From the IMG/VR virus record IMGVR_UViG_3300023174_000033, positions 124,001 to 188,000 of that record: a DNA stretch of 64,000 bases; one strand, written 5' to 3'. The first letter of the stretch is position 1. Each line of letters starts with the position of its first letter. Position numbers and translations under genes: made by a program. Positions 4,387 through 59,343 of the stretch are shown here, piece after piece. The notes under the pieces are model-generated. The model made no database searches and had not been told where the DNA came from. It saw nothing but the letters and a program-made list of their open reading frames with translations.

Positions 4387-4388
4387 AA

Positions 4389-5516: not shown

Positions 5517-6215
5517 ATGAATATAATTGGAATAGACCCCTCTCTGATATCAACTGGAGTTTGTATAAATGGTAAAGTCTTCAACTATTGCAGAGAAAGT
5601 GATGCGACACTCAGTAAAGGTGGGTTTAGTAAGTGGTTTAAATTATGTGAGGGTAAATTAGAACTTAGATGGATTTCTTACAGGAATTTTGACAATTATT
5701 CCGACGGTGAGTTAGTTAAACTAAAAGACTATGACAAAATAACTGACCTCATTTTAGAAGATTTGGAAAAAAACATTGATCCAAATGTGAAAACAATTGT
5801 TGGAATTGAGGGTTATAACTTTGGAGCACAAGTTGGGGATTTGATTGATTTAGTTGCCTTTTCAACACTCCTCCGGAAGAAAATATATGATTATATCACT
5901 AAAGAAATTTTGGTTTTTTCTCCAAGTACTTTGAAGCAGGAAAGTTGTAAACTTACTTATAAACCTATTGATATTGGAAAAAAGAAACAAAAATTGGAAT
6001 GGCGTAACAATTTTGGAATAAGTGGTGGGAATTTTACAAAAAGAGAAATGTTCTTATCAATCATTGAAAATGAGGAATTTCAAGACGAGTGGTCATTACA
6101 TTGTAAATCAGTTTCATCAGAAATATTAGATAATAAAACAATCAAGAAACCATATGAGGATGTAAATGATGCATACCTCATTTACCAAATTATCAAAAAA
6201 CAATATTCAATTTAG
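5517..6215 (+). CDS. RuvC-like Holliday junction resolvase
   Basis: IIGIDPSLISTG, IEGY, DVNDAY acidic catalytic pattern. Confidence 0.75.
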   Translation: MNIIGIDPSLISTGVCINGKVFNYCRESDATLSKGGFSKWFKLCEGKLELRWISYRNFDNYSDGELVKLKDYDKITDLILEDLEKNIDPNVKTIVGIEGYNFGAQVGDLIDLVAFSTLLRKKIYDYITKEILVFSPSTLKQESCKLTYKPIDIGKKKQKLEWRNNFGISGGNFTKREMFLSIIENEEFQDEWSLHCKSVSSEILDNKTIKKPYEDVNDAYLIYQIIKKQYSI

Positions 6216-6229
6216 TAGTATAATCAATT

Positions 6230-8583: not shown

Positions 8584-9219
8584 ATGAATTCTAATACCAA
8601 CGAACAAGAATTATTCCAGATGGTTTCGGGATTTTACAACGGGTTCAAAGGAACTTTTGTTGAAATAGGATCCGGTCACCCAATTGAAAATAGTAATACA
8701 TATTTCCTAGAAAGGAGTGGGTGGAGTGGCATGTTGGTTGAACCAATAACCGAATATAATTCCCTTTATAAGATAAACAGACGTAGCTCAATTGTTGAAA
8801 ATTTCGCCTGTGTTGAGAAGGGGTACAATCAAAAAAAAATTGAATCTTACATAACAGAACCACTTAATAAGTCTAATGTAACAGGTATTTATGGCAAAGA
8901 AAGTGCAAATACAACAAAATGGCCAGTTAGTACCATATCAAAACTCCTAAAAAAACACTCAATTAAATTAGTTGATTTTTTAATGATAGATGTCAATGGA
9001 TATGAACATGAAGTTTTAACTGGTATTGACTTTGGGGATGTTAATTTTGGATTGATTGGAATTCAGTGGCACGATTATAATTGGAACAATAAGTCAAATG
9101 ACTTCACATATTTAGGAGACTATGGATACAGTTACCTAACGATGGCGGGAACTGTTGAAATATGGGCAAATAATGTATTTCCTTTGATTAGTAGGGAAAG
9201 ATATAAAACAAACTTATAA
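8584..9219 (+). CDS. FkbM-family methyltransferase
   Basis: FVEIGS, NSNTYFLE, LVEP, IDVNGYE. Confidence 0.8.
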   Translation: MNSNTNEQELFQMVSGFYNGFKGTFVEIGSGHPIENSNTYFLERSGWSGMLVEPITEYNSLYKINRRSSIVENFACVEKGYNQKKIESYITEPLNKSNVTGIYGKESANTTKWPVSTISKLLKKHSIKLVDFLMIDVNGYEHEVLTGIDFGDVNFGLIGIQWHDYNWNNKSNDFTYLGDYGYSYLTMAGTVEIWANNVFPLISRERYKTNL

Positions 9220-16100: not shown

Positions 16101-19100
16101 GACCCCATCAACCCACAATCCATAAAAAAGTCCTCGAATGTCGTCACCATTAGCCAAATTGAATGAATTCGGGTCTCTAAATGGAGCAAAACTTAAATAA
16201 ATATCTTTTTCTATAGTGTTATCTTCATTTGAAGGTATGCCAGATGGATAATTTGGAACAGATCCCATGAAATTACCACCAGAGAATACCCCATTACGCC
16301 AAAGTCTACCTCGGAATATCCCATCATTGAATTCACCAGAACCCCATATCGAATTATTTATCAATTCTCCTGTACCAAATTCACCACCATTGAAAACTCC
16401 AGACTCCCAAGAAAAAACTGTTGTGTTTTGAGGTCTAGTTACAAATGTTTGTTCCTCTGATCCATATATTGATATAAATTTACCACTATTGAATATTCCA
16501 TTTTTCCATTGGGCATAATTTCCAAATACACTTCCATAGAAAGTTCCATTATACCATATTGACTGCATGTTTGAGCTAGCACTAGCAGATGTAAATTCAC
16601 CAGCGGACATTTGACCATTATACCAGAAAACTACACCATTACCACCAACTAAACCATTCTGAACAACTCCTCCAAAAAACTTTGATTGAGTTCTGCCCAA
16701 GAATTCCGGAATAAATCCAAATCCGTTAACTGCATAAATTGTTGGTAGCCAATTAATACCACCTACGGGAAATGGGGAATACCAACCATATCCAAAAGTT
16801 GTTTCTTCATATTTTATTGATTGGTCGCCAAAAATTCCAGATTCAAAGTCACCTGCAAACCATTTAGACCTCCAAAATTTACCATTACTGAATGTACCAT
16901 CTACCCAATATGAATTATAAAATTCACCAGAAAGGAATTTACCATCATTCCAGATTCTTCTGATTGGTTTTTTAGCAATATCAAAGTAATTTATAGCTGA
17001 AATATAAGGATTTACACTTCCCTCATTTGTCTCATCATTAGTCTGATAAACTTGTTCTGTTCCAAAAATTGGAGTAATATAATACCAAGTTAAACTATTG
17101 GAATCGGAAAATTTCCCATTAAGGAAAGTTCCATTCAACCAATATCCACTTTGGAATTCTCCGTTTGAAAAGGTTGCACCATTCCAATAACAAGAGTGGA
17201 AATATCCACCAGTATTGGTGATATTTGTTATATGGGATTGATATATAAATCCATTCTCAACCAAGGAATTATTCCTAGCAAAAACTACATTTACAACTTT
17301 TGGTAAGGATGTTGGGTCTATATCAAAAGTAGATGGCTTTACATATGGGACACGGTTTGTTAGTTTTGTATTCTTGAAATAAACACGTTTGAATACCCCA
17401 CTATAAACTGTGGAGTTTTCAATTACAACTCTGTGCATAGATGCGTAATTTACTGTTTCCGAACCAATTATGCTGTAGGTCCCCACGTTAGTCAAGAATG
17501 ATGACATGGGTGAATTTGGAGATGATACATTTTCAGATATGGATACCAATGGACTAGTACCCCAAGTTGGTCTACCCAAGTTATAATAAGGTAGTCCACC
17601 CAGTAAATTCTGAACCCCATTAACATACTGTCCCTCTAACTCCACTCTTTGGGTAGGGGATTGATAGGTAATTGAGTTTATGTGGATCACTTCCCCCAAC
17701 TGTGGTAATTTTATTGCCGGATTAAACCAACTCGCATTCCCTCTTAATTGGTTGAATTTTGTAAATATATTAAAATTTGATGATAGTGGGGAAACTCCAG
17801 GCTGCTGCCTAGACATTACTAATTTAGCTCCAAACTTTACACCACCCGTAACTTCACTAGCAATAGTGGACCTATTGTAAATAACAAGTTCAAAATCCTC
17901 AATCAAAGAACCACTAACCCAATTTGAATTAACAAAAACCCCACTGTGGAAATTTGAATTTTTCAAAAGAACATTTTTGAAAATCTTGTCAACTATATTT
18001 GTTGGAAGGAGATTATCCATTTTGGGCTTCAATGGCATAGTAATCGTTGTTTGGTCCCTATCAAAAGTGTAAACATCTTTATTTAGCTGCACATCCCTAT
18101 ACCAACCGAGAGCTCTAGTTTCTATGTCAATTGAACAATAATTATAATATTTTGATGTTTCAGATGCCAGAACTTTTTGATTCGCCCCACCTATTGTATA
18201 TTGCCTCGTAACATAAGAATCAGGTGTTAATTGTGGGTTATGTGGCACTAAACATTGATAATATTCCCACTTTTCTGTCTGTGGGTTGTAAATTCTAACA
18301 ACGTCGTTTATTTGGTAACTATTTGCTCCATATATAGGTGTTGTTTGATTAATCAAAAATGATTGAATATCTGTACTATATTCTCCTCTGAATTGTCCAC
18401 GGGAAAGAGAATCAAATGGGCCAGTAGTATTGGAGAAAACTCTTTCATAGGCTTCCGCATTTAAGGGGGTATAACCATCTGTAGCCAATATGGGATCTTG
18501 TAAAGTAGGTACTGAAATATATTTAAAAATATGAAGTGTCTGTCCGTAACCATATATGCTTACAGGTCCACCAATTTGGTCAACGGGCACAGCAATAATA
18601 ACTTCCTCGAAAGCTGGCAGTTCAATTAATCCTTGCCCGCCACGTATTGGAGGAGCGACTTGTTGTGGAATTTCATATAAATAATAAAACCAAGTTCCAG
18701 CAGCAACTTCCGCTGGTGTTGGTGTCCAAGACGAGTCATAAGCAGGAGATAACCTGTTTGCTTGTGAACTAAATCTAGCGGTCACATCAGTCCACCAAGT
18801 AATACCATTAATTTGTGTGGTGTTCGGTACTTCCTTTGTTTGAAATTGGGCACTAGTTGACCTACTTATGTAAAATCTGTTCCTATTTGACCTCTTATCT
18901 CTAACCGAAACTGCTTGTTTTGAACCAACCTTTGATGTAAATTCAGCATCCCAATATAAGTTCAAAAGATACTTTGTTTCATATGGTAGAATAATTCGGT
19001 TATCAGCGTCAAGAGTTCCAAGAAAGAATTCCTTATTGACTCTCTCAATATAAAAAGTATCATTTTTCTCCATTCTGAAAAAATCTTCATCAGAAATGAA

Positions 19101-21462: not shown

Positions 21463-22578
21463 TTACTCAAATTCTTTATTATCCAAAGATACATAAAAAT
21501 TATCAAAATCATAAAATTCTTCATAAATATCTCTTAACTTATCATAATTTATAGTTTTAATAATTTCTTTAATTGACCAACCTTCTGGGTTAATCCAATT
21601 GTTTACATTTTCGTATCTCATTATTTTATCTTTCTTCAGTCTTAATAAATAATGATTCTTAATTATTTCAAATCTTTTCTTCGTTAGAAACTTATCAGGA
21701 TTACTCAAAATATTCTTCACAGTTTTGATTATTTTCTGCGCATTCTGTTCTGTGGTCTGTGTTGTTATACTCGTCAATCCTTGATTGTTGTATCTACTTT
21801 GACCGCATCTAATATAATAGACCAATCCCTGTTTTTCTCTACACTCTTGATACAGAGGAGAATCAAGCCCCATAGATAACATCGCATTTATAAAATTGAC
21901 CCAGTTGAAATTTTCTTCAATGAGTGGTGAAGTCATAATCAGAGAAACTTTTTTACCAAACTTTTCCCTTGGCTCCAAAATAACATCATCATAGGGCCCG
22001 AAAACAGATTTTGTTTCAATATTTTGAGACGCGAAACTATCAGTATATTTGAAAGGTGAACTTTTTGAAACATTTATAATTTTACTTGGATACTTAAATT
22101 GTTTTTCAAAAAAATTCAAACAGTCCATAAATTTCATTGATTCTAGATCCTCCCTCAACCCTATCGCGTCATAATCTTTAAATAATTTCCTTGACAAATT
22201 CAATGCGTGTGACTCGGTTTGGTCGGAAAAATAATCCCCATATTCCTGTAGAACAATTTCACGTTCCATTTCAAACTGCTCTTTCGTTATATTGAATTGA
22301 CTCATAAGATCAACTAACTCATATCTCCTTCTACTTAACATTTCATCAAGACCCGTGAAATAAAAAACAATTTCATTTTTTGAGGTGTAAGCATTCCAAG
22401 AAATTGCTTCTCTCTCAAAAATCTCTCTTAAATTTTCAAAATTTTTACACATTAAATGTTCCATCAAATGTGATATACCAAAAATTCCCCTTTCCTCTAT
22501 GTTAGTCGATCCATAGTAAACAAGGTAAAATCCCGATAAGTCCGTTTCACTCTTTAAGTTTATAAGCATTTTAGTCAA
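21463..22578 (-). CDS. M16 (insulinase/pitrilysin) zinc peptidase
   Basis: Inverted zinc motif HLMEH, NAYT, REKQGLVY. Confidence 0.9.
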   Translation of the reverse strand: MTKMLINLKSETDLSGFYLVYYGSTNIEERGIFGISHLMEHLMCKNFENLREIFEREAISWNAYTSKNEIVFYFTGLDEMLSRRRYELVDLMSQFNITKEQFEMEREIVLQEYGDYFSDQTESHALNLSRKLFKDYDAIGLREDLESMKFMDCLNFFEKQFKYPSKIINVSKSSPFKYTDSFASQNIETKSVFGPYDDVILEPREKFGKKVSLIMTSPLIEENFNWVNFINAMLSMGLDSPLYQECREKQGLVYYIRCGQSRYNNQGLTSITTQTTEQNAQKIIKTVKNILSNPDKFLTKKRFEIIKNHYLLRLKKDKIMRYENVNNWINPEGWSIKEIIKTINYDKLRDIYEEFYDFDNFYVSLDNKEFE

Positions 22579-24964: not shown

Positions 24965-26059
24965 TTAATTCAGTGTAAGAAAAATCTTTCGGGCTGACCT
25001 ATCAACCGCTATCACTTTTACTTTAACCTCTTTACCAGATTCCAACTTTTGATTTGACTTTTCAAGTTCAGAAGTGTGGATAAGTCCATTTGTTTCTTCG
25101 TCCAATTGAATCAAAGCTCCGAATGGTTTCATATCTTTAACCTTTCCTGGTATGATTTGACCAACCTTAATCTTATCCCATAGAGTTTCACGTAAGATTT
25201 GTGTAAGGATAATTTTATCCTTAATGATTTCTTTGATGTAAAACTCAATCGCAACTCCTGGACTAATTTGATTAATTCTATTGGTCCAATCAGAGTGCAT
25301 GTTTGTTTTGTGAATCATGCCGGTCAAACACTCATTAAATTCAACGAATACACCAAAGTCCGTTGTTCCAGTAACGTTACCTAGATAAGTAGTGCCAAAT
25401 TCAAGTTTCTGAATCTCTTGGGGTATAAGTGTTTGTAGATATCTTCTTCTACTTACAATGTAAGTTCCTTCTTCTCTGGAATAAGATTCAATCGCTAATT
25501 CCAAGTTTTGGCCAACAATTGATTCTGGTTTGTACAATTTATTGATACCAGCTAGTGTATTAGGCATAAACCCTGGTAATATAACACCTTCAAATTCAAT
25601 CTCTACCGAATATCCAGCCGGAGTAAGTTCTTTTATAGTACCCTTAACTATCGTGCCATCATCAAGAGCTGCGAGATTTCTACGAGCTATGTTTTCGTAA
25701 AGTTCAACAAAAGAACCTCTGATAAAATAATTATCTTCATCAATTTTTGTGACCAACACGTCAACCTGTTGACCAACTTCCAAATTCCGTAGATATGCAG
25801 CTTCAGAGGGTCTATCTTCAACCCGAATCCAATCTTTGAACCCAGCTTCAAATGCGAAATATCCTTGAGAGACACCCACAAAAACTGACTTAAAAAGTTC
25901 TCCCTCAACAGGACTCAAAGGTGAACTGTCTTCGTACAATCTTTTCAACTTTTCTCTGGATTGAGGGGAATTCATCACCTTTTCTTCCAAACTAATTTCC
26001 TTCTCAAAGAGATCCAAGTGCAAAAACCTAGCATCTCCGTAAAATCTTTTTTTCTTCAT
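24965..26059 (-). CDS. rpsA: Ribosomal protein bS1-like (about four S1 domains)
   Basis: S1 repeats, e.g. GNVTGTTDFGVFVEF...GMIHK and GKVKDMKPFGALIQL...GLIHTSEL, plus IVSRR. Confidence 0.82.
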   Translation of the reverse strand: MKKKRFYGDARFLHLDLFEKEISLEEKVMNSPQSREKLKRLYEDSSPLSPVEGELFKSVFVGVSQGYFAFEAGFKDWIRVEDRPSEAAYLRNLEVGQQVDVLVTKIDEDNYFIRGSFVELYENIARRNLAALDDGTIVKGTIKELTPAGYSVEIEFEGVILPGFMPNTLAGINKLYKPESIVGQNLELAIESYSREEGTYIVSRRRYLQTLIPQEIQKLEFGTTYLGNVTGTTDFGVFVEFNECLTGMIHKTNMHSDWTNRINQISPGVAIEFYIKEIIKDKIILTQILRETLWDKIKVGQIIPGKVKDMKPFGALIQLDEETNGLIHTSELEKSNQKLESGKEVKVKVIAVDRSARKIFLTLN

Positions 26060-27173: not shown

Positions 27174-30100
27174 TTATAGTAATCTTGTTCCTGTTTTTAT
27201 ATTTACTTCCTTTCTCTTAATTAACTTACTACCAACTTCTAGACTAACAACAGGAATTTGTGTTTGAAAATGATATTTAAAATCCCAAGTTGATTTAAAT
27301 ATGAATGACCTAACTACATGATAACCAAACTCATCTAACATCGGATAAATTGATTTAGCACTTGATACATTTGTCAATTTTAGCAAATTCTTATCTTTGT
27401 TGACTTTTGAAATAATTCTCTCACCACTCATTCCGAAATATGTTAGACTGGTATCAAATTTGTAATTTCCATAATTATCAGTTTCAGTATAAGATTTGAA
27501 AAGTTCAATATTTTTGAATATTGGACTGTAAAATCCACTGTGTCTGTACATCTTGTTAAATATTTCATTTTTCAAACCAGAAAAATTCGGAACAGGTTGT
27601 TTATCAACTCTATTATACCTTATTAAATTCGCATAAGGAACATCACTCACATAATCTAATTTTTCTTTAGAATCTATAACACCATCTTTTAATTCAAACC
27701 TAGGTTTTAATAAATTTGAATCAGTTTCCAAAGCCTCAACTATATTAGTATCTCTTTTTACAAAAAATTCATCTGGTCCCTCACACGTTATGAAAAATGG
27801 TAATTTTGAAACAGATGTCAAATTGTCAAAGTCATAAATTTTAATTTCACCGGTTTCTTCGGTGATTATATACCTCACAGAATTCATAAAATCGTATTTA
27901 TTAGATAAATCATTTAAGGCATTCATAAAATTATTTGCAGATAATTTTTGAAAAATATCTGTATACAATTCATCTCTATTTTTTTCTCTTAATTTATTGC
28001 CCAATTTTATCAACTTACTAACTCCAGAGGGACTTGTCTCCGGCCAAACATCTCCAAGGTTAAGTTCTAATAACGAAGGATCATATGTGTGGTCATTGAT
28101 ATAAATATTAATTAATATATTTTTGAATTTTTTATTTATGTAAATCGCAATACCATTATCCAATGTGCCATCAATCACATCCACCCCTTGAGCAAGTGGG
28201 GTCGCGACGACATTACTATCTTTCAAATACATATAATACCTATTATTCATCTCAATTATATTATTGCCCCTGAAAGTATTATCATATACGAAATCTTTAT
28301 CTGGTTTCAAACTGTATAACCTTACCCAATTTGGATTTTGGTCTGGTGGAAGTGAGTTCTTTGGAATTACAGTAGTACTTGGGCCAGTCATTCCATATAC
28401 AACATCCTTATACAGAACTATATCAAAAGCTTGGTTTTCGTAAGTTTTTGTACCGTTACGAGTGAAAATCCCACCAGTATTTTTTATATTTGGGGAACCA
28501 CCTGCATCAAAACCGTAACCATTGAGTATATTTAATCCAGTTAAACTACCATAACTTACCTTGGGCGTGTATGGATATGTTACTTGTATTGTTCCAACCA
28601 CACCACCGTTGAGATTTGTGTATTCTTTAGTTCCCCTATATTCTACCGAACTACTCCATAGATTTATTTTCTGCCATCTACCCCAGGGCTTATTATTTGG
28701 CTGCAGGGGAGTTCCAGAAAGGGTAAATCCACCAATTGAAGGAATTTCCTTATTTCTCAAATCCGACATTTGAAAAGGAGATTCAACCCAATATGGGAAG
28801 TTCTCAAAAGTATATCTACCGAGAGAAAACTTACTTTGAATAACTTGACCAATTGTACCAGGTATTGTCCTAACTTTGTTGTCACCAGATGTTGGTACAT
28901 TTGTTATTTGACCAGTTGGATTCGCAAACCATATCTTACCTTTATAATAAGCAGCTATTTTTGGTCCGTAACCGATATTAATAAGATCCCAAGGCATAGT
29001 AGATCCAGGTATTGCAGTATCATACCACCATTCATCATCATAATAAACAAAAGGGTGAACTTGTGGAAAAGCAGCATTTGAATAATTACCACTACCCACT
29101 TTCGCAGAAGAAAGAAAAACAGTTTCTGTTACATATTTCGTACCATTTGGATTCCCAACATAATTCCAACCATTGTAATTTGATCCCGCTATCGCATATC
29201 CATTGGACAAATCAACCCAGTATTTATCACTCGGTCTTAAATCAACTTGATTTGCAGGATTAAATGTCGGATCAGTTTCGGTTCTTGTTCCCACTCTCAA
29301 AATCGGATCGTATCCAATTTTCTGTTTTTCAGGATCTGTAGGTTTTGTAGTTATAAAAATTTTATTATTCCAAATTGTCATCTCATACCAATAATACGGT
29401 TTGTCCATTTTCCAATTGTCAATTATGGTCCAATTCATACTATTAAAAAATGATTGGGTCACACCTCTATTTGGATCATCTCCACTTGGAACAACTCTTG
29501 TGTTGTTATCAGATACCAATATGCTAAATTTATAATCGTCAAATTTATTAGTTACCTTTACATTTATTTTATCTAATTTTCCATTTGAAATGTTAACACT
29601 CGCAACATCGTAAATTTTAAATTTCAAACCTCTAAATAAAGTCGAGTTAGTGGTGATCCCATCAGATGGATTGAACTGTGACCATTTTTTTGTGTTTTTG
29701 ATTATTTTGCCATCAGAAAAATCTGTTTTTTGTCCAAAAAAATAAGAGAAATAATCTAAATCTGTTTTGACATATTTTATCACATCAAATTTTAAGTTGA
29801 TGTCAAGTTCACCACCACCTGTGATATTTTTTATATGTAAAGTATGGTTAATATACTTTGTATCATCTGGATTTATTGTATAAAAATAATCTAAATTTTT
29901 CTCACTTCTATTAACTTCAGTTACAAAAGGATTGACTGTTTTATTATAATCATCTGCTAAAAATGAATTATTAAGAAGATATGGATAATCACCATCTGAT
30001 AAAGAATTTTGAAAGGCCCATTTTACTCTCGTTGAGTTTTTTCTCCATAATTCATTTAAATCATTTTCAACAATTCTAAAGGTTTCATTATTAGCAGTGT

Positions 30101-31754
30101 ATTCAGAGGATACAGGAACATTTACAACTTCACCCTCAACTACAAAATCATCAAATTGTTTTGGCTTTGATGTGGATTTTAAATTTTGTAAGTAAAATTT
30201 CGGCTCATCATTTTCAGTTAATATTTGGTCTTCCTCGTACTCAAATTTTGAAAATTCTGTGTCTACTATATCAGTATCCCAATCTTTTATATCTGTGAAT
30301 TCACAACGGTAAATTTCAAATTCTACAGGCTCAATGTCAGCACTACTAACTAAATTAATTGTCTTCTTTAAACTAGGATCCGCCTCATTTATGTAATATT
30401 CAAATTTATCATCAGATTGTATAAAGGCATAATCAGTAACTATAGTGATTATACCATCTACATTCTTATTTAATTTATGATAAAGGTCACCAATCTTTAT
30501 TATCCACATATCATAATTATCAAAATCCGATATTTGAAATTGATTACCATTTTGTAAATAAATAAAATTCTCTCCTTCTTCGGAAATAACTTTTACTAGA
30601 TTTGCATTAATTATTGATTGTTGGTTAGAAAGAGAAACATCTGATAAAATCTTATATTTTATTATTTCTGTTGGAACAATCTTATCAACATAGTTTCCAC
30701 TTTCGGTTAATACTTTTTTCCTTTTTTGCTCACCAATCACTTTGTATTTTTCAACCTTATAAACTCTTCCACCAATTTCAATAAATGGATTCAGATCCAT
30801 ATTATCCAAAAAGGGTGAACTACCGTCAGGCATTTCTAAATTATTATCAAATGTTATAATCGCACCAGGTTTAACTTGTGTGAATTTGTTGGGACTAACT
30901 GATAGAACAAATTCCATTTTATTAAAATAAAATCCCATATATCTATTAATGGACCACTTTCTAATAGAAAGTGGTGTTGCTGGCATATCGTCAAAAAGAA
31001 AACTAAAATTTAAAATATGTGGATATACTATCTTGTTATCGGAAAATCCTTTGTAGATAAACTTTTCCATATCCATAAAGGTGAATTCATTTTGAAAAAC
31101 ACTCTCTAGCATCATAGACCTTTTTGTGTAACCACCGGTCTCATAATCCATACCTATAAAGTATGAAAACTCTAACTTTGAAAATTCAATTTCAAGAGAT
31201 GTAGCTGGAAAATTTGTATTATCAGTAACATTTCTCCTTAAAAATTCTCCCAAATCGGTTTTTGGAGTCATGTCAAATACCTTAACAACTTTCATTTTTG
31301 AAAGTATTTCCGTTTGGAAATTTTCCTTATTCAATTCAATCAGACCAGGTCCATCAATCCTTAATATTATGAAATGTGTTGGTAATCCACTTTTACTAAT
31401 GTGTAAAGGAGCGAAGTATTCAAACTCCTCCGTATAATCTTTATTATCATAAATATTTCTAGCTCCACAATTATATAAGTCATCATATTGTTTTGAGAAA
31501 TCACTATACATTGTGTCATTGTCACCGTCGTATTTAACACCATAAGCAACCTCTACTGGGGTGTTTCTAAAAAAATGTGGGATTAACTCATCAATAAAAT
31601 TTTCTTTTTTGAACCTGTATTTTCTATAACGTACATTATTCAATTCCGGACTGGAGTCAATACAATCCAAATATAATTCGTATCCACTACCAACTACAAA
31701 TTTCGCATTAGTAGTCAGTCCAGTATTCGTTCTAAGTAATCCATGACTTCTCAT
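27174..31754 (-). CDS. Large (1526 aa) putative virion/baseplate protein
   Basis: Size, composition and position in an AATATATA-led operon; no enzyme motifs. Confidence 0.55.
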   Translation of the reverse strand: MRSHGLLRTNTGLTTNAKFVVGSGYELYLDCIDSSPELNNVRYRKYRFKKENFIDELIPHFFRNTPVEVAYGVKYDGDNDTMYSDFSKQYDDLYNCGARNIYDNKDYTEEFEYFAPLHISKSGLPTHFIILRIDGPGLIELNKENFQTEILSKMKVVKVFDMTPKTDLGEFLRRNVTDNTNFPATSLEIEFSKLEFSYFIGMDYETGGYTKRSMMLESVFQNEFTFMDMEKFIYKGFSDNKIVYPHILNFSFLFDDMPATPLSIRKWSINRYMGFYFNKMEFVLSVSPNKFTQVKPGAIITFDNNLEMPDGSSPFLDNMDLNPFIEIGGRVYKVEKYKVIGEQKRKKVLTESGNYVDKIVPTEIIKYKILSDVSLSNQQSIINANLVKVISEEGENFIYLQNGNQFQISDFDNYDMWIIKIGDLYHKLNKNVDGIITIVTDYAFIQSDDKFEYYINEADPSLKKTINLVSSADIEPVEFEIYRCEFTDIKDWDTDIVDTEFSKFEYEEDQILTENDEPKFYLQNLKSTSKPKQFDDFVVEGEVVNVPVSSEYTANNETFRIVENDLNELWRKNSTRVKWAFQNSLSDGDYPYLLNNSFLADDYNKTVNPFVTEVNRSEKNLDYFYTINPDDTKYINHTLHIKNITGGGELDINLKFDVIKYVKTDLDYFSYFFGQKTDFSDGKIIKNTKKWSQFNPSDGITTNSTLFRGLKFKIYDVASVNISNGKLDKINVKVTNKFDDYKFSILVSDNNTRVVPSGDDPNRGVTQSFFNSMNWTIIDNWKMDKPYYWYEMTIWNNKIFITTKPTDPEKQKIGYDPILRVGTRTETDPTFNPANQVDLRPSDKYWVDLSNGYAIAGSNYNGWNYVGNPNGTKYVTETVFLSSAKVGSGNYSNAAFPQVHPFVYYDDEWWYDTAIPGSTMPWDLINIGYGPKIAAYYKGKIWFANPTGQITNVPTSGDNKVRTIPGTIGQVIQSKFSLGRYTFENFPYWVESPFQMSDLRNKEIPSIGGFTLSGTPLQPNNKPWGRWQKINLWSSSVEYRGTKEYTNLNGGVVGTIQVTYPYTPKVSYGSLTGLNILNGYGFDAGGSPNIKNTGGIFTRNGTKTYENQAFDIVLYKDVVYGMTGPSTTVIPKNSLPPDQNPNWVRLYSLKPDKDFVYDNTFRGNNIIEMNNRYYMYLKDSNVVATPLAQGVDVIDGTLDNGIAIYINKKFKNILINIYINDHTYDPSLLELNLGDVWPETSPSGVSKLIKLGNKLREKNRDELYTDIFQKLSANNFMNALNDLSNKYDFMNSVRYIITEETGEIKIYDFDNLTSVSKLPFFITCEGPDEFFVKRDTNIVEALETDSNLLKPRFELKDGVIDSKEKLDYVSDVPYANLIRYNRVDKQPVPNFSGLKNEIFNKMYRHSGFYSPIFKNIELFKSYTETDNYGNYKFDTSLTYFGMSGERIISKVNKDKNLLKLTNVSSAKSIYPMLDEFGYHVVRSFIFKSTWDFKYHFQTQIPVVSLEVGSKLIKRKEVNIKTGTRLL

Positions 31755-37661: not shown

Positions 37662-37985
37662 ATGTATTACTCAACAAAAATTAACAACGAAAGCCTAGAC
37701 AGTTTTCTATCAACAGCCCAATTAGCAATGTTGTATATAAAAGCCTCATGGTGTGGTCCTTGCAAAATATTGTCACCGGTAGTTGAAGAAATTGCCAACG
37801 AACCAAATAACAATTTAGTTGTTGGAAAAATTGACGCAGATGATGATATGGAATTTGTAAAGTCTCTAAACGTAAGAAATGTGCCAACTATTTTATTTTA
37901 TAAAGAAGGTGAACTTGTGGAAAGGAGTGTGGGGGCTAAATCAAAAGGTGATATCCAAAAGATAATTGAAAATTTAACAGCATGA
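37662..37985 (+). CDS. trxA: Thioredoxin
   Basis: WCGPC and VRNVPT. Confidence 0.92.
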   Translation: MYYSTKINNESLDSFLSTAQLAMLYIKASWCGPCKILSPVVEEIANEPNNNLVVGKIDADDDMEFVKSLNVRNVPTILFYKEGELVERSVGAKSKGDIQKIIENLTA

Positions 37986-38950
37986 GTTTAATTCGCAAAT
38001 TTGTAAATAAACATTACAAACACTTCAATTCAGCGTCTCTTAAAGATGCTTCAGATTCTTACATTTCACACATTGAGGAAGGTGGTAAAATGATGATCAC
38101 TTTAGCCGGCGCTATGAGTACAGCCGAGCTTGGAATTTCTTTGGCTGAAATGATTAGACAAGATAAAGTACATATTATCTCTTGTACAGGAGCAAACCTA
38201 GAAGAAGATTTAATGAATCTAGTTGCTCACTCACACTACAAAAGAGTTCCAAACTATCGTGATCTAACACCACAAGATGAATGGGATTTATTAGAACAGG
38301 GACTAAATAGAGTAACAGATACTTGTATACCAGAAGAAGAAGCTTTCAGAAAGATTCAGAAAGTGATTGAGAAGTATTGGAGAATTTCTAATAAAACTGG
38401 AATTCCAATGCTGCCACACGAATACCTATACCTAATTATTAACAATGGTGATTTGGAGTCTGAATATGAAATTGATCCAAAAGATTCTTGGTTGGTAGCA
38501 GCCGCTGAAAAAAACATCCCCTTAATTGTACCAGGTTGGGAAGATTCCACCCTTGGAAATATATTCGCATCAAATGTGATTAAGGGAAATCTTAAATCAA
38601 CTGACATTAAAGGTGGTATTGATTACATGGTTTTCCTATCTGATTGGTATAGAAATAACTCTGATGGTAAAGGAGTTGGGTTCTTTCAAATTGGTGGAGG
38701 TATCGCAGGAGACTTTCCAATCTGTGTAGTTCCGATGATGTATCAAGATTTAGAATGGACTGATGTTCCTTTCTGGTCTTACTTCTGTCAGATTTCTGAT
38801 TCAACCACAAGTTATGGTTCCTATTCTGGAGCTGTGCCAAATGAAAAGATTACTTGGGGTAAATTAGATATAACAACACCAAAATTCATCATTGAAAGTG
38901 ATGCTACAATAGTAGCTCCTTTGATGTTTTCTTACATTCTAGGAGAATAA
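37982..38950 (+). CDS. Deoxyhypusine synthase-like protein (bacterial DHS/SpeY type)
   Basis: LAGAMSTA, TGANLEED, IGGG, SYSGAVPNEKITWGK (catalytic Lys), ESDATIVAPL. Confidence 0.9.
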   Translation: MSLIRKFVNKHYKHFNSASLKDASDSYISHIEEGGKMMITLAGAMSTAELGISLAEMIRQDKVHIISCTGANLEEDLMNLVAHSHYKRVPNYRDLTPQDEWDLLEQGLNRVTDTCIPEEEAFRKIQKVIEKYWRISNKTGIPMLPHEYLYLIINNGDLESEYEIDPKDSWLVAAAEKNIPLIVPGWEDSTLGNIFASNVIKGNLKSTDIKGGIDYMVFLSDWYRNNSDGKGVGFFQIGGGIAGDFPICVVPMMYQDLEWTDVPFWSYFCQISDSTTSYGSYSGAVPNEKITWGKLDITTPKFIIESDATIVAPLMFSYILGE

Positions 38951-39888: not shown

Positions 39889-39972
39889 AAAACATTTTTT
39901 ATTTACGATATATAACTTCAAGTTTGATAAAAGAGATTGGGCCCCACAAAGGGGTTCAAAAAAAAAATTTCT

Positions 39973-40821
39973 ATGTTTAACACACTTACTTACCATGCTC
40001 TCGTACAAAAGATGCGAGACTTTTTTTTGCAAAAAGGATTCTATGAAGTCCCCACGCAATCAAGACTGTCAATACTAGCAGCTTGTGAAAATCCTCACTC
40101 AATAACCACCTACAATTACCAAGGACTGGTTTGGCCACTTCCTCAAACGGGGCAAATGTGGTTAGAGTATGAATTACTCAAAAATCCAGAATGGCCAGGA
40201 TGTTTCTGTATTTCTACATCTTATAGACAAGAGAAAGATCCAATTCCTGGAAGACACGAACTAATTTTCCCAATGTTTGAATTTGAGTCTAAAGGAGGCA
40301 TTGAGGAAATGAAAAAACTTGAATCGGAACTACTTGAACATCTAGGATTCTCAAAACCTGTTGAAGTAAAGTATGACGATGTTTGTGAGGAGTATGGTGG
40401 AGTCCAAATCCTTGAGAACGAACACGAACAAAAAATGTGGAATGAAAAGGGTTCTGTAGTTTCTCTACAATATTTTCCAAGAAGAACAAACCCATTCTGG
40501 AATATGAAGAATAAAGATGGGCAAATTTTCAATAAAATTGATGTTATTCTCTATGGTCAAGAAACTATTGGTTCTGCTGAAAGAAGTTGTGACATTGAAA
40601 AAATGAGAGAAATGTTCTATACTATTGAAGATGGAAAATATTCAGATAAACTTTTTGAACTATTCGGTAAAGAAAGAGTTGAAAATGAATTAGAAGAATT
40701 TTTCAAACATGATTTCTTTCCAAGATTTGGAGGAGGAATTGGAATGACTAGATTAGCAAGGGCTTACGAATTGTTACAAAAAGAAAAGGTCACCACTCAA
40801 ATAGAAGAAAATGTTTATTGA
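39973..40821 (+). CDS. Class IIb (Asp/Asn/Lys) aminoacyl-tRNA synthetase paralogue, catalytic domain only
   Basis: Motif 1 MRDFFLQKGFYEVPT, motif 2 SYRQE...RH...FPMFEFE, ETIGSAER, motif 3 GGGIGMTRL; no anticodon-binding domain; probable start at ATG 39973. Confidence 0.82.
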   Translation: MFNTLTYHALVQKMRDFFLQKGFYEVPTQSRLSILAACENPHSITTYNYQGLVWPLPQTGQMWLEYELLKNPEWPGCFCISTSYRQEKDPIPGRHELIFPMFEFESKGGIEEMKKLESELLEHLGFSKPVEVKYDDVCEEYGGVQILENEHEQKMWNEKGSVVSLQYFPRRTNPFWNMKNKDGQIFNKIDVILYGQETIGSAERSCDIEKMREMFYTIEDGKYSDKLFELFGKERVENELEEFFKHDFFPRFGGGIGMTRLARAYELLQKEKVTTQIEENVY

Positions 40822-43649: not shown

Positions 43650-43681
43650 TTTGGCAATCCAAGATATTTGTAGTAATTTTG
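43650..43681 (+). promoter_or_regulatory. Bacteroidota-type primary-sigma promoter
   Basis: TTTG(43650)-N20-TAATTTTG(43674-43681). Confidence 0.7.
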
Positions 43682-43711
43682 TATATGGTAAATTATAACC
43701 AAAATACAAAT

Positions 43712-44824
43712 ATGGAAATAAAAGAAAAATTTATTGAATTAACAAATAGAACCTATCCACACGGTACGGAACAAGACCTATTTCATTTGCTACCCGAAAA
43801 TCTAGAAACCGATGAATTCGGAAATAAATTCATCATTATTGGAGAAAATCCAACTACTTTATTCACTTGCCATCTTGATACCGCCTCTTCTACTGTTACT
43901 GATGTAGTGCATAAGTTTGATGGAGATTTTATTAAAACAAATGGTTCATCAATTCTTGGAGCTGATGATAAGGCTGGATGTGTGATTTTGCTAAAAATGA
44001 TTGAAAACGGAATTAAAGGAATTTATTACTTTTTTCTTGGTGAGGAAAGGGGGTGTATAGGTTCTAGGAAACTTGCTAACAAACATAAGACCAATCCACT
44101 TCCACATATTACAAAAGTAGTATCATTTGACAGAAGGGGAACTGATTCGGTAATCACACATCAACTTGGTGGTAGGTGTTGTTCTGATGAATTTGGGGAT
44201 GCGCTCTCACATCAGTTAAACATTAATGGTAGAGATTTTAAATACTCTACTGACCCTACTGGAATTTATACCGATTCAGCTCAATTTATAGATATATACC
44301 CAGAGTGTACAAATATATCCGTTGGATATTACGATGAACACACAACTCACGAAAGACAGAATATTGATCACCTGAAAAGACTTTCAGAATCAGTACTAAA
44401 GGTTAATTGGGAAAAACTTCCAATAAAAAGAAATCCTAAAATAAATGATTTTTATGAAGAAGAGGATTATGGTTACTTTGGGGGATATACCTATGATACA
44501 AAACCAACTAGTTCGTTTAAAAAGAAAACTGTGTACTTTATAGATCCTATTTACAATTACAGGTCATCAGTTACCTTTAGTAGTTATAGTAATAAAATAT
44601 CGGAAATGGAATTATCTCCTGATAGACTTCAACAAGAGGAGGATAGAATACACGACTTGTTTAGATCGTTTAATATAGAATTTGAAAGTTTCAGATGGGA
44701 TGGTGCTTGTTTGTATATTACATATAACGAAACGCACACTTCAACAATGTATAGACAAGAACTTGCTGAATATATTGGTGGTTTTGATTTTTGGAAATCA
44801 GAATGTGATTATGATGATTTCTGA
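43712..44824 (+). CDS. M28/M20-type metallopeptidase-like protein (paralogue of 56185-57360)
   Basis: CHLDT, LGADDKAG, EERGCIGS, SFDRRG, TNISVGYYDEH; start taken from alignment with the paralogue. Confidence 0.82.
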   Translation: MEIKEKFIELTNRTYPHGTEQDLFHLLPENLETDEFGNKFIIIGENPTTLFTCHLDTASSTVTDVVHKFDGDFIKTNGSSILGADDKAGCVILLKMIENGIKGIYYFFLGEERGCIGSRKLANKHKTNPLPHITKVVSFDRRGTDSVITHQLGGRCCSDEFGDALSHQLNINGRDFKYSTDPTGIYTDSAQFIDIYPECTNISVGYYDEHTTHERQNIDHLKRLSESVLKVNWEKLPIKRNPKINDFYEEEDYGYFGGYTYDTKPTSSFKKKTVYFIDPIYNYRSSVTFSSYSNKISEMELSPDRLQQEEDRIHDLFRSFNIEFESFRWDGACLYITYNETHTSTMYRQELAEYIGGFDFWKSECDYDDF

Positions 44825-45621: not shown

Positions 45622-45768
45622 AACTTAAATTATATATTTTAAAGTAAAATAAAGTCCAAAAAATATTATAGAGTATATGTATCATGATCTTGCATGTTTT
45701 GCGTTTTTTTTCACCTCCAAAACTTACAAATCCAAGAACATATAATAATAAAACAAAGTGTGTACACT

Positions 45769-47184
45769 ATGCTGACAAACGAAAATCAACCAAATAATGA
45801 ATTGATACAAGAGGAGACTAATTACCCAAAGGTATCCAATTCGCTTCAAGACGACGATGATGAAGCTGATAAATTTAAATCTGCAAAAAAACCAACCGAT
45901 CCCAAGTCCAAAACACCGGTACTTGATACATTTAGCAGAGATTTAACCAAGTTAGCGGAAGAATCAAAGATTGACCCAATTATTGGTAGAGAAAAAGAAA
46001 TTGAAAGGGTAAGTCAGATTCTCGCCAGAAGAAAAAAGAACAATCCAATACTTATTGGTGAACCTGGTGTAGGTAAGTCCGCCATAGCGGAGGGACTAGC
46101 ATTGAGAATAGTTCAAAGAAAAGTATCAAGAGTTCTCTTCAATAAAAGAATTGTTACCTTGGATTTAGGTTCAATGGTTGCTGGTACAAAGTACAGAGGT
46201 CAATTTGAAGAGAGAATAAAAGCTGTAATGCAGGAGGTTGAAAAAGACCCAAATATAATTCTTTTTATTGATGAAATTCACACTATTATAGGCGCTGGTG
46301 GATCTAGTGGATCACTTGACGCTTCAAATATGTTTAAACCGGCCTTGGCACGTGGTGAAATTCAACTTATTGGAGCTACAACCCTTGATGAATTCCGCAA
46401 ACATATTGAAAAGGATGGTGCTCTTGAGAGAAGATTTCAGAAGGTTGTGGTTGAACCAGCTTCACCAGAAGAGACTCTATTAATCCTACATAATATTAAG
46501 GATAAATATGAAAGTCACCATAATGTTAATTACACCGATGAAGCTATTAAAGCTTGTGTGGACTTAACTACCAGGTTTATGACTGATCGTTTTTTGCCTG
46601 ATAAAGCTTTAGACGCACTAGATGAAGCTGGATCTAGGGTTAATATTTTTAATATTGAAGTTCCAAAGGAAATTACCGATATTGAAAATAAAATACTTGA
46701 AGTTAAAGAGAAAAAAACAATTGTAGTTCGTAATCAAAGGTATGAGGAAGCAGCTCAATTACGCGATGTTGAAAAACAACTGCAACAAAATCTTGAAGAT
46801 TCAAGAAAGAAATGGGATGAAGATCAGAAAAATTCAAGAAAGACAGTTGACGAGGATAGTGTTGCTGATGTAGTTAGTATGATGACTGGCATTCCTATGA
46901 GGAAAGTTTCTCAAAAAGAGAATGAAAAACTATCTTCATTAGCATCAATAATTACGTCAAATGTAATTGGACAAGATGACGCTGTTCAGAAGGTAGTGAA
47001 GTCAATTCAAAGAGGTAGGGTAGGTCTGAAAGATCCAAATCGTCCAATCGGGTCTTTTTTGTTCTTGGGACCAACAGGTGTTGGAAAATGCGTTACAAAA
47101 GATACAAGTATAACCCTTCGTAATAAAAAGACAGGTGAAATATATACTTGCACGATATTTGATTTATTGCAACAAATATCCTAA
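45769..47184 (+). CDS. clpC: ClpC/ClpB-family AAA+ unfoldase, N-terminal fragment (no N-domain, ends in a split-intein N part)
   Basis: DPIIGRE, GEPGVGKS, FIDEIH, LERRF, RFLPDKA, UVR middle domain, VIGQ, FLFLGPTGVGK, then intein-like sequence and stop. Confidence 0.92.
   Translation: MLTNENQPNNELIQEETNYPKVSNSLQDDDDEADKFKSAKKPTDPKSKTPVLDTFSRDLTKLAEESKIDPIIGREKEIERVSQILARRKKNNPILIGEPGVGKSAIAEGLALRIVQRKVSRVLFNKRIVTLDLGSMVAGTKYRGQFEERIKAVMQEVEKDPNIILFIDEIHTIIGAGGSSGSLDASNMFKPALARGEIQLIGATTLDEFRKHIEKDGALERRFQKVVVEPASPEETLLILHNIKDKYESHHNVNYTDEAIKACVDLTTRFMTDRFLPDKALDALDEAGSRVNIFNIEVPKEITDIENKILEVKEKKTIVVRNQRYEEAAQLRDVEKQLQQNLEDSRKKWDEDQKNSRKTVDEDSVADVVSMMTGIPMRKVSQKENEKLSSLASIITSNVIGQDDAVQKVVKSIQRGRVGLKDPNRPIGSFLFLGPTGVGKCVTKDTSITLRNKKTGEIYTCTIFDLLQQIS
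47089..47181 (+). mobile_element. Atypically split intein, short N-fragment (31 aa)
   Basis: CVTKDTSITLRNKKTGEIYTCTIFDLLQQIS* directly after Walker A GK: block A C-x3-DT-x-I plus the TIxDL helix. Confidence 0.85.
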
Positions 47185-47201: not shown

Positions 47202-47435
47202 ATGGAAACAAATACTGAAGAAAAAGAAGTTAAAGTTTACAGTCCTCTATGGGAAAACTACTTGGAGAAATTAAACGATTTAGGATTGGAAGAAAAAACA
47301 AAATGGATGAAAATTGTTGATCCTCTGGTAGAATTACCTTTTGTAACAAAAAATTATTTTCCACTGGCAGAACGTGAATTTTTGGAAAAATTAGAAAGTG
47401 ATGAATCTTTCAAAGAAAAATGGGGTCAGATCTGA
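47202..47435 (+). CDS. Hypothetical protein
   Basis: 77-aa acidic ORF after clpC-N. Confidence 0.55.
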   Translation: METNTEEKEVKVYSPLWENYLEKLNDLGLEEKTKWMKIVDPLVELPFVTKNYFPLAEREFLEKLESDESFKEKWGQI

Positions 47436-47449
47436 CCCCATTTTTCTTT
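47412..47449. terminator. Perfect 38-bp palindrome, bidirectional terminator
   Basis: AAAGAAAAATGGGGTCAGA|TCTGACCCCATTTTTCTTT between convergent genes. Confidence 0.82.
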
Positions 47450-48563: not shown

Positions 48564-48624
48564 AGGTTTGGTTTTACTTTTTATATTATTTTTAATTTTT
48601 AAGTTTTTGTGTTATATTTGTCAT

Positions 48625-49263
48625 GTGAAATTTGATAACTATAGATACATCTATCCACCAAGACCGAAGAATGCTATATCCCCAAGTGAATTAAATTTTT
48701 GGGATAATAAGTCTCTCATTGTGCAACCAAAGTTTAATGGATCAAATACTACGATTTATACTGATGGTAGGAAAATAATCACCATGAATAGACATGGGCA
48801 AAAACTTACAAATTTTAAGATCAAGGATAATGAAATTTTAAATCTGCACAAATCTGGTTTGGGTAAGTGGACCGTTATAAACGGTGAATATATGAATAAG
48901 GGAAAAGTTGATGAAAAAAAAATAAACTTTAATGATAAATTTATAATTTTTGATATTTTAGTTTTTAATTCAGAATATTTAGTTGGTGAAACTTTTGCTA
49001 ATAGGATTGAACTTTTAAACAATACTTTTCCAATATACAATATTGGTTCCTCAACTTACAGTTTGTTTTCTGAAAATATAGGAATTGTTAAAAGTTATGA
49101 AAGTGGATTTTCAAATCTCTTTGAAAATCTATCAAAAATTGATATGATTGAGGGGTTAGTTATGAAAAGAAAAACCGCAAAGTTGGAAATTGGAAATACT
49201 GAAACTAATAACACCAAGAGTCAATTGAAATGTCGGAAACCAACCAAGAATTATAAATATTGA
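48625..49263 (+). CDS. Minimal ATP-dependent polynucleotide ligase-like nucleotidyltransferase
   Basis: Motif I QPKFNG, motif III INGE, IIIa IFDI, IV EGLVMK, V KCR; GTG start 4 nt after TATATTTG (48613-48620). Confidence 0.75.
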   Translation: MKFDNYRYIYPPRPKNAISPSELNFWDNKSLIVQPKFNGSNTTIYTDGRKIITMNRHGQKLTNFKIKDNEILNLHKSGLGKWTVINGEYMNKGKVDEKKINFNDKFIIFDILVFNSEYLVGETFANRIELLNNTFPIYNIGSSTYSLFSENIGIVKSYESGFSNLFENLSKIDMIEGLVMKRKTAKLEIGNTETNNTKSQLKCRKPTKNYKY

Positions 49264-56184: not shown

Positions 56185-57360
56185 ATGGATATAAGAAAAA
56201 AATTCCTAAAATTAACAAAACGTACTTACCCTTATGGAACAGAAACTCAACTGGTTTCTTTTTTGCCACAAGGATATTTCATGGACAAACATGGTAATTA
56301 CTATTATAAAATTGGTGAATCCAAGACAGCTTTCACTTGTCACCTAGATACCGCATGTAAAACACAAGTCACTGTAAATCATAAGATTGACAAGAATATA
56401 ATTTCTACTGATGGGAAATCAATCCTTGGAGCTGATGATAAAGCTGGTATGACAGTACTACTTTACATGATAGAGAAAAACATTCCTGGTCTTTACTGTT
56501 TCTTTATCGGAGAAGAAGTTGGGTGTATTGGATCTGGTAAAGCTTGTTATGACTACGAATTCACCAATTATGACCGTATGGTTTCTTTTGACCGAAGGGG
56601 TACAGAGTCAATAATCACCTTCCAATCATCAAAAAGATGTTGCTCTGATGAATTCGCTAACGAATTGGCAAATAGATTGAATAAGCATGGACTAACTATG
56701 AGGTCGGATAACACAGGTGTCTACACTGATTCTGCTGAATTCATTGATGCTATACCAGAGTGTACAAATATTTCAGTTGGTTATTACCGAGAACACACAA
56801 ACTTTGAGCATCAAGATATTGACCACTTGATTAAACTTTGTATAGCTGTTGCCAAAATTGATTGGGAAACACTTCCAGTTCAGAGAGATAAGACAAAGGT
56901 TGAATATAAGTCCTATTCATATAGTTCTTATAGTAACAAAGGATTTTCGTCTTACGATTATGATTCAAAAAAATACGGAAATGAAGCTGGATTTAGCACT
57001 TATGACTCTTGGTCAGGTTGGGACAAGTCTCCATCAAGGAGGAAAAAATATAAGAAAGAGTATGGTTACTATGACGATTTCTACTTTGAAGATGAAGAGA
57101 AGTATGACAAATATAGTTATGACCTAGATACTGGAGAAGAAAAAGTCGGAAGGTCTTACTATAACAGTATTGATAACGATATAACAGATTCTCGTAGCAA
57201 TCCTTATGTCAATAAATATTCCTCTTTAAGAGAAATGGTTTATGATGATAGACTGACCGATGCTGAAGTTCTTACTCTAAAAGATCAATACTTTGATTTG
57301 ACCGATAGAGAACAATTGGAAACTTATATTGATTTGAGAAATCAAGCGGCTTCCCTATAA
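56185..57360 (+). CDS. M28/M20-type metallopeptidase-like protein with Tyr/Ser/Asp-rich tail
   Basis: CHLDT, LGADDKAG, EEVGCIGS, SFDRRG, TNISVGYYREH. Confidence 0.82.
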   Translation: MDIRKKFLKLTKRTYPYGTETQLVSFLPQGYFMDKHGNYYYKIGESKTAFTCHLDTACKTQVTVNHKIDKNIISTDGKSILGADDKAGMTVLLYMIEKNIPGLYCFFIGEEVGCIGSGKACYDYEFTNYDRMVSFDRRGTESIITFQSSKRCCSDEFANELANRLNKHGLTMRSDNTGVYTDSAEFIDAIPECTNISVGYYREHTNFEHQDIDHLIKLCIAVAKIDWETLPVQRDKTKVEYKSYSYSSYSNKGFSSYDYDSKKYGNEAGFSTYDSWSGWDKSPSRRKKYKKEYGYYDDFYFEDEEKYDKYSYDLDTGEEKVGRSYYNSIDNDITDSRSNPYVNKYSSLREMVYDDRLTDAEVLTLKDQYFDLTDREQLETYIDLRNQAASL

Positions 57361-58563: not shown

Positions 58564-59343
58564 TTAATTAGTCCTATATCTTTTCATTATTTCTATTAGA
58601 AATGGATCTCTAACGATTTCATCATCGGTGAATTCTATAAAACCTATTCCTGGCAGTCCTTCTAGTCTGTCAATAGCATCTTCTAGTCCACATTTCTCGC
58701 CTTTCATAAGTTTAAGGTCAATTTGGTCGGTATCTCCTAGAATAACAAGTTTTGAGTTCTCACCCATACGAGAAATGAAAGTTTTCATTTCAGTTACTGT
58801 GCAGTTCTGACTTTCATCAAAAATACAAAATGATCCAACAGATTGACCATCTGATGTATATTGCCCAAAAGTAGAACCCCTCAAAAAGTTAAGTATGGTT
58901 TCCTTTATGAATCCATTGTCCTTTAAATATTTGGTTTGATAACTACCAACAAGCTTTATCAAATTATCATAAAAGTGTGTGTAGTAAGCTAAAGTTTTTT
59001 CATTTATATCACCTGGTAAGGCACCAAGTCCTCTTTGTGATGTAATCTCAACAATTGGCTTTGTTAATATTATTTGACCAATATTCATATCTTTATTTTT
59101 AAGACATTCCAAACCAGCCATTAGGGATATCAAAGTTTTTCCGGTACCGGCACTGCCACGGACAAATGTTATCCGATTGTTCAAAATTGTATCAAAAAGC
59201 TCCTTTTGCTTTTTATTTTTGAATTTGCAATTAATTTTATATTGAAATGTGCGGAGTTGGTCTTTTAGATAGTTGTCCATCTCCTGCATTTCCTGCATCT
59301 CTTGTTCAATTGTTTTTTTAGCCCTTGGTTTAATTTTTGGCAT
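58564..59343 (-). CDS. phoH: PhoH-family ATPase
   Basis: GSAGTGKT, LGALPGD, FLRGSTF, DESQN, GDTDQID, IVRDP. Confidence 0.92.
   Translation of the reverse strand: MPKIKPRAKKTIEQEMQEMQEMDNYLKDQLRTFQYKINCKFKNKKQKELFDTILNNRITFVRGSAGTGKTLISLMAGLECLKNKDMNIGQIILTKPIVEITSQRGLGALPGDINEKTLAYYTHFYDNLIKLVGSYQTKYLKDNGFIKETILNFLRGSTFGQYTSDGQSVGSFCIFDESQNCTVTEMKTFISRMGENSKLVILGDTDQIDLKLMKGEKCGLEDAIDRLEGLPGIGFIEFTDDEIVRDPFLIEIMKRYRTN

Follow-up and report, generated by a model that had tools for sequence, protein, structure and literature searches.

Two distant genes in a phage genome carry parts of an atypically split intein predicted to assemble a ClpC-type unfoldase by trans-splicing

The 64,000-nucleotide stretch analysed here (the window) spans positions 124001-188000 of the 464,605-bp viral contig IMGVR_UViG_3300023174_000033, and contains a gene for a ClpC-like AAA+ unfoldase that ends within the Walker A motif of its second nucleotide-binding domain (NBD2). 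Such a gene raises the question of whether the phage carries a broken clpC or only one part of a divided one, and, if the latter, where the other part lies and how the two products could be joined. From the sequences we put at about 0.85 the probability that this phage encodes its ClpC-type unfoldase as two distant genes, each with part of a naturally and atypically split class-1 intein (31 + 125 amino acids, aa), whose products are joined by trans-splicing.

The gene in the window (the N-half; Table 1) encodes NBD1 with the Walker A sequence GEPGVGKS, an AAA_lid_9 domain and a UVR-type M-domain; of NBD2 it includes only the first strand and the P-loop, as far as the Walker-A lysine. As the preliminary description of this locus had stated, the protein follows ClpC to FLFLGPTGVGK and then continues as a 31-aa tail beginning C-V-T-K-D-T, which is closed by a TAA codon at 47182-47184. 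Its closest GenBank relatives, L001 and L002 (assemblies from uncultured phages, 642 and 635 kb), are 75-78% identical to the N-half up to GVGK and encode uninterrupted ClpC-like proteins of 707 and 701 aa that read GVGK|TQLAK in one open reading frame (ORF), so that the window protein departs from ClpC exactly at the P-loop lysine. Dozens of viral contigs are likewise uninterrupted, and their tblastn match to the window protein stops at residue 441. The Pfam matches of the N-half are AAA, AAA_lid_9, UVR and positions 1-33 only of the 166-position AAA_2 profile; the true P-loop ends near profile position 15, and the remaining 16 residues of this match fall in the tail. No Clp_N domain matches the 471-aa N-half at E<=0.1 in Pfam, and its N-terminus is a short acidic and lysine-rich stretch, as in contiguous relatives of about 700 aa.

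Chance does not account for the tail, since residues 1-26 of a contiguous intein that occupies the same ClpC site in a related phage (locus L035) align with it (46% identity, E 4e-5). This 173-aa mini-intein runs from C-F-L-S-D-T to G-I-L-S-H-N and is followed by T-Y-L-A-K and the remainder of NBD2. Six distinct loci in the viral-contig collection end 30-34 aa past GVGK with related C-x-x-x-D-T tails, and the split ClpC N-halves retrieved number 22 (the window and 21 others), each ending in a 30-38-aa tail and each retaining Cys1. The proposal in the preliminary description that the 31 residues are the N-fragment (IntN) of an atypically split intein in the second Walker A motif is thus borne out by both the L035 alignment and the 22 N-halves that share this type of tail.

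Motif and tblastn searches of all frames of the window revealed no ClpC NBD2 motif, no C-terminal intein fragment (IntC) and no C-extein, in agreement with the earlier statement that no matching C-half occurs there. It had also been suggested that the remainder of the contig be searched for a distant gene encoding an intein fragment of about 100-130 aa that ends in HN and is followed by T-(E/Q/Y)-LAK. Searching viral contigs with the C-extein of L001 retrieved such a gene in L126, which is part of the same contig: its reverse complement overlaps window positions 1-7706 with 0 mismatches, and a 41-mer across the GK|C junction of the window is present in that one contig only. The starts of the two halves are 47,667 bp apart, on opposite strands. 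The first ~125-132 residues of the partner protein are IntC-like and end in Y-Y-T-N-G-L-L-S-H-N; T-Q-L-A-K and a C-extein 73% identical to that of L001 follow.

The two gene products complement each other closely. Pfam matches the partner to AAA_2 positions 16-166 and to ClpB_D2-small, the exact complement of the N-half, and the class-I ClpC/Hsp100 domain set (two AAA+ modules, AAA_lid_9, UVR-type M-domain, AAA_2 and ClpB_D2-small) is complete only when both products are combined. Joining the exteins gives a predicted protein of 705 aa that is 75-76% identical to the L001 and L002 ClpC proteins and gapless at the junction, the host sequence halting at GVGK and resuming at TQLAK as for an in-frame insertion. 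The C-extein carries G-I-G-F in NBD2, at what we take to be the ClpP-docking loop of ClpC (I/L/V-G-F/L), and the predicted product may work with a ClpP. As for the intein, the partner's IntC matches residues 55-173 of the L035 intein (53% identity, E 6e-43), and in a joint alignment IntN and IntC tile that intein without overlap. The split form consists of two separate ORFs, a 31-aa IntN with its own stop and a 125-aa IntC with its own start, and the break precedes block B. Cys1, the block-B His (A-D-N-H), S-H-N and Thr+1 are all present.

Support for the HINT fold comes from the contiguous L035 intein, to which the window halves are linked by the alignments described above. Its AlphaFold2 (AF2) model has a predicted local distance difference test (pLDDT) score of 79, with the core above 90, and the top 50 matches of this model in a Foldseek search of the PDB are all inteins. 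A profile of the IntC family, the window partner included, matches the solved inteins gp41-1 (E 2.6e-11), the Cat consensus atypical intein (CatC; 5.7e-9) and VidaL (6.2e-9).

With the genes, their complementarity and homology, the catalytic residues and their conservation as direct observations, we infer the remaining steps from established intein chemistry. Gene 1 (window 45769-47184, plus strand) would make the N-extein with IntN, and gene 2 (47.7 kb away on the opposite strand of the same contig) would make IntC with the C-extein. The short IntN would be captured by IntC to form the HINT fold, whereupon an N-S acyl shift would place the carbonyl of the Walker-A lysine in a thioester with Cys1, and transesterification would transfer the acyl group to Thr+1. 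Cyclisation of the terminal Asn and an O-N shift would then leave a native K-T bond, restoring the Walker A sequence GPTGVGKT in a 705-aa ClpC. NBD2 could not exist without splicing, because its P-loop is divided between two polypeptides.

Several observations weigh against this reading. The partner's IntC scores only 17.5 bits on the Pfam profile PF14890 (Intein_splicing, cut-off 35.8), on which the IntC of locus L045 lies above the cut-off (37.9) and the L035 intein below it (31.4); the assignment of the window IntC to the family therefore rests on homology to members above the cut-off. In its block B the His is present and the usual Thr is replaced by Ala, and Thr, as a rule a weaker nucleophile than Cys or Ser, stands at +1, so that splicing could be slow. 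The two genes were not found to share a promoter motif, with sigma-70 promoter and terminator scans doing no better than shuffles.

A weak nucleophile would also suit an arrangement in which the halves associate through their intein fragments without splicing, the intein serving only as a non-covalent dimerisation handle, and split-intein fragments are known to bind tightly before any chemistry takes place. Docking, however, would not need Cys1, the block-B His, the penultimate His, the terminal Asn and Thr+1, and these are kept in nearly all split members: an HN|T ending is present in all 60 split C-halves retrieved and the block-B pattern (C/A)-A-D-(N/D)-H in 58 of them. Furthermore, a 156-aa HINT domain left within the NBD2 P-loop would block nucleotide binding by keeping the Walker-A Lys and Thr apart. 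We consider association without splicing quite unlikely, and trans-splicing remains the preferred interpretation.

The division of the gene recurs in independently assembled genomes. Four contigs from other, independent assemblies carry an identical 496-aa N-half with the same 77-aa ORF behind it. In a second genome, represented by a 201,277-bp contig of a different sample, the C-half lies at 104,840-106,012 on the minus strand and the N-half at 151,040-152,494 on the plus strand. The distance is 45.0 kb, the geometry and the neighbouring genes on either side match those of the window's contig, and the halves are 79% and 83% identical to their counterparts there. In a third sample the N-half is found on contig L004 (91% identical) and the C-half on contig L204 (87%), each collinear with the corresponding region of the window's contig. 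Because the sequence derives from a metagenome assembly, the break might have been produced by a chimeric contig or by a mis-joined contiguous intein; but with the same junction, stop position and flanking genes in two further samples (83-91% identity), and the partner gene also recovered in several samples, we regard an assembly artefact as extremely improbable.

Alternatively, an intein or endonuclease event together with a rearrangement could have broken a clpC gene of which both pieces are now decaying relics, leaving the phage with no functional full-length ClpC. The halves do lie far apart and on opposite strands, the endonuclease-like ORF that separates them in relatives (see below) is gone, and an intact ClpC is the norm in related phages, being found in 97 of the 120 best N-half matches. 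Decay is nevertheless difficult to reconcile with two full-length ORFs in which every catalytic residue is present, or with an arrangement that has stayed the same in genomes between which the halves share only 79-83% identity. The 31-aa length and stop of IntN are kept in L004 and in locus L288, the 125 aa of IntC are kept across the three genomes, and the IntN length and stop, together with the 390-aa length of the C-half, persist from 98% down to 75% identity. Among three diverged genomes the ratio of nonsynonymous to synonymous changes (pN/pS) is 0.06-0.11 for the exteins and 0.29-0.47 for the intein halves (against L004 and L288, 0.06-0.08 for the N-extein and 0.31-0.47 for IntN), and these figures overestimate the true ratios, synonymous sites being close to saturation. 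Both intein halves are accordingly under purifying selection, and it is very unlikely that the two genes are relics.

If the two genes are joined by trans-splicing, their separation could itself have a use. Opposite-strand uncoupling over 45-48 kb in at least three diverged phages might let the halves use different transcription units, making assembly of the second ATPase ring conditional, either timed or controlled by dosage; or the N-half (NBD1, M-domain and IntN) might be active by itself, perhaps by mixing into host ClpC hexamers. The preliminary description had raised both ideas, as an AND-gate or timing switch and as poisoning of host ClpC; we regard such roles as speculative and on balance unlikely.

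How the halves came to be apart can be approached through their relatives, among which the same intein allele is found in each of the states that Dassa et al. 2009 (PMC2677866) set out in their model. It is contiguous in L035. In L206 (a member of the window's clade), in L028 and in some 18 further distinct loci the gene is fractured and an ORF of 380-406 aa separates the halves; L037, also fractured, retains a 91-aa remnant of this intervening ORF, and in fractured L045 there is only a 78-nt gap. The window's contig and its two relatives have the uncoupled state. The preliminary description had called the window gene a fractured gene. That term, which strictly denotes an endonuclease gene flanked by both halves in a single locus, fits L206, L028, L037 (with its remnant) and others, whereas the window genome has its halves uncoupled.

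Members of the intervening ORF family separate intein halves at three insertion sites, ClpC NBD2, ClpC NBD1 and a terminase-like P-loop, and it is mainly from this position that we regard its members as endonuclease-like, putative free-standing homing endonucleases. The ORF of the relatives has no match in Pfam, NCBIfam or PDB sequences; in PHROGs it matches phrog_22677 (unknown function), its language-model neighbours carry DUF559, Vsr or NUMOD3, and its AF2 model is poor (pLDDT 48.6). No homologue of it was found in the window, L126, L004, L203, L204 or L288. At the second of these sites, the NBD1 Walker A (...SHN|T-S-I-V-E-G-L-A), related phage ClpC genes in L084, L085, L088-L090, L093, L096, L107 and L110 have a second intein, homologous to the one in NBD2; here too there is an IntC-type ORF, accompanied by an intervening ORF of this family (for example L093 6911-7324 and L110 6122-6541); some related ClpC genes are thus in three pieces.

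Downstream of its C-half, the window's contig retains the glycosyltransferase genes found after ClpC, whether contiguous or fractured, in relatives, so that the C-half evidently stayed in the ancestral place. A single inversion of about 49 kb, with one breakpoint in the gap between IntN and IntC, fits the observed geometry. The genes upstream of ClpC are not syntenic between the uncoupled clade and its contiguous or fractured relatives, only the downstream neighbours of the C-half being kept, and a single inversion could therefore not be confirmed. We interpret the uncoupled state as the last step of the Dassa series, leading from a contiguous intein to a fractured gene that includes a free-standing endonuclease-like ORF, to loss of that ORF and finally to genomic uncoupling.

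Two 208-211-aa paralogues, 46% identical, flank the left edge of the window near the IntC gene (window 8584-9219, plus strand, and L126 8633-9259), about 10 kb apart and on opposite strands; as repeats they could have mediated rearrangements. The IntC-ClpC(C) gene is preceded, at a distance of 51-72 nt, by a tRNA-Cys(GCA) gene in L126 (9482-9553, approximately window -1775 to -1846, minus strand), L203 (8345-8416) and L204 (7417-7489). This tRNA gene is kept on that side in all three uncoupled genomes, with a methyltransferase gene inserted between in L203, and a tRNA-Arg(TCT) gene is found about 1 kb further upstream in L126 and directly upstream of tRNA-Cys in L203. RNA hairpins upstream of C-half genes were reported by Dassa et al. 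(PMC2677866).

Downstream of IntN, the next elements had been described as a 77-aa ORF and a terminator. The ORF is present, and is kept at the same place in L004, L288 and L289; it has no match in Pfam, PHROGs or NCBIfam and no similarity to IntC, and is probably co-transcribed with the N-half. As for the terminator, there is a perfect 18-nt palindrome with a T-rich run after it, and L004 has a similar hairpin, but a consensus terminator scan did not call it; it is possibly a bidirectional terminator between convergent genes, although the evidence is weak.

Elsewhere in the window, the peptidase, PhoH, S1-domain and ligase-domain genes listed in Table 1 form, together with ClpC, a notable protease and proteostasis set. 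A deoxyhypusine synthase homologue (PF01916, E 2.4e-38; 37982-38950, plus strand) adjoins a gene with a class II aminoacyl-tRNA-synthetase-like core (PF00152, E 4e-11; 39937-40821, plus strand), which over a 158-nt stretch shares 79% identity with the 'tRNA ligase' of Prochlorococcus phage P-SSM2. For a phage, such translation-related genes are unusual. Two large minus-strand ORFs, of 3555 aa (10170-20837) and 1526 aa (27174-31754), have no Pfam domain at E<=1e-5.

Table 1. Positions of the split clpC genes and of other features (window coordinates unless stated; negative values lie to the left of the window)
Feature	Position	Strand	Remarks
N-half ORF	45694..47184	+	496 aa; 471 aa from ATG 45769, the start in the preliminary description
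N-extein of ClpC-like AAA+ unfoldase	45769..47088	+	440 aa from ATG 45769; gene callers also use ATG 45694
IntN, predicted N-fragment of atypically split class-1 intein	47089..47184 including stop (coding to 47181)	+	31 aa; Cys1, D-T at positions 5-6
77-aa acidic ORF	47202..47435	+	directly after IntN; not part of the intein
18-nt perfect palindrome	47422..47439		overlaps stop of 77-aa ORF; T-rich run after
IntC-ClpC(C) partner	L126 9626..10798 = window -1919 to -3091	-	390 aa, from ATG used by gene callers
Partner ORF, full extent	contig 120909-122102 = window -3091 to -1898	-	about 1.9 kb left of the window
M16 peptidase	21463-22578	-	
S1 RNA-binding-domain protein	24965-26059	-	
M28-like peptidase	43679-44824	+	PF04389
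ATP-dependent ligase domain protein	48568-49263	+	
M28-like paralogue by similarity	56185-57360	+	no Pfam match of its own; both M28-like genes match the same L004 regions, 52-54%
PhoH	58564-59343	-	

These findings bear on several fields. For protein engineering, where natural atypically split inteins are called rare (PMC11766414) and an IntN of about 30 aa is prized because it can be made synthetically, the family adds natural pairs by the dozen, well diverged from one another (22 IntN and 60 IntC retrieved), all of them Cys1/Thr+1 inteins inside a P-loop. For intein evolution, a single allele family displays every stage of the Dassa series including the final genomic uncoupling, which PMC2677866 could illustrate only by cellular DnaE and Nanoarchaeum PolB. 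For phage biology, a huge phage appears to tolerate, and to have kept through substantial divergence, a proteostasis enzyme that is predicted to be makeable only post-translationally from two distant genes. And for annotation, the two ORFs, now labelled 'ClpC' or 'hypothetical protein', would be misread as a truncated gene and a fragment.

Among the closest known systems are the atypically split inteins of phage large terminases, AceL-TerL, GOS-TerL and the engineered consensus Cat-TerL, which share with the ClpC intein a short IntN and a long IntC (31/125 aa here; 25/104, 37/115 and 30/104 aa, respectively, in PMC11766414), insertion in a P-loop, and a phage or metagenomic origin. The link to the AceL/GOS TerL type drawn in the preliminary description has held up: the family IntC profile matches the Cat chain 6dsl_B at the E value given above, with a template-modelling (TM) score of 0.68 normalised to the target, and homologous IntCs (37-52% identity) lie in terminase-like P-loops of L112, L114, L115, L117 and L202. 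Unlike these inteins, the one described here has a ClpC-type unfoldase and not a terminase as host, uses Cys1/Thr+1 in place of Cys/Cys or Ser/Cys, has an IntC about 20 aa longer, and is encoded by genes 48 kb apart and not in one locus. The terminase-like loci themselves (L112 3518-5254, L114 7312-9042, L115 1428-2465, L117 4316-6472, and L201/L202) have the IntC extein sequence ...HN|T-T-x-x-A-A-Y-I-L-W, which looks like a large-terminase P-loop and is identified by motif only; the L117 intein follows S-R-Q-S-S-K and is contiguous, and the four others are split at the same atypical site.

The fractured genes of Dassa et al. 2009 (PMC2677866; for example gp41-1, NrdJ-1 and IMPDH-1) resemble L206, L028 and the ~18 other loci in layout, and gp41-1 is the best solved-structure match to the family (root-mean-square deviation 2.3 A). 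They differ from the window's arrangement, in which the halves occupy separate loci in opposite orientations and no intervening ORF is left. Genomic uncoupling was a hypothetical 'step IV' in that study, an atypical split site was its single exception, and its 8 host types were DNA synthesis and repair enzymes, whereas the host here is a proteostasis enzyme. Its only named uncoupled cases, cyanobacterial DnaE (Ssp/Npu) and Nanoarchaeum equitans PolB, are alike in having the halves of an essential enzyme at separate loci, joined by trans-splicing; but they are cellular DNA polymerases with a canonical split (~100 + 35 aa), in contrast to the phage-encoded, atypically split AAA+ unfoldase.

VidaL and PolB16 OarG are likewise natural metagenomic inteins with very short IntN fragments, and their hosts and nucleophiles differ from those described here. 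VidaL, the top Foldseek match of the L035 model (E 8e-7), has an IntN of 15-16 aa. PolB16, split 15/168 aa (PMC11766414, PMC10189870), also has an IntN of 15-16 aa (PMC10189870), compared with 31 aa in the window.

Full-text searches of the literature, which did not reach the supplementary tables of the Novikova survey, returned no intein in a ClpC, ClpB, ClpA or Hsp100-type ATPase. Atypically split inteins, fractured phage genes and halves at separate loci (DnaE, Nanoarchaeum PolB) were all known already; what is new relative to the literature searched is the ClpC host, the Cys1/Thr+1 combination at an atypical split site, the size of the natural family, and genomic uncoupling in a phage that is kept across genomes.

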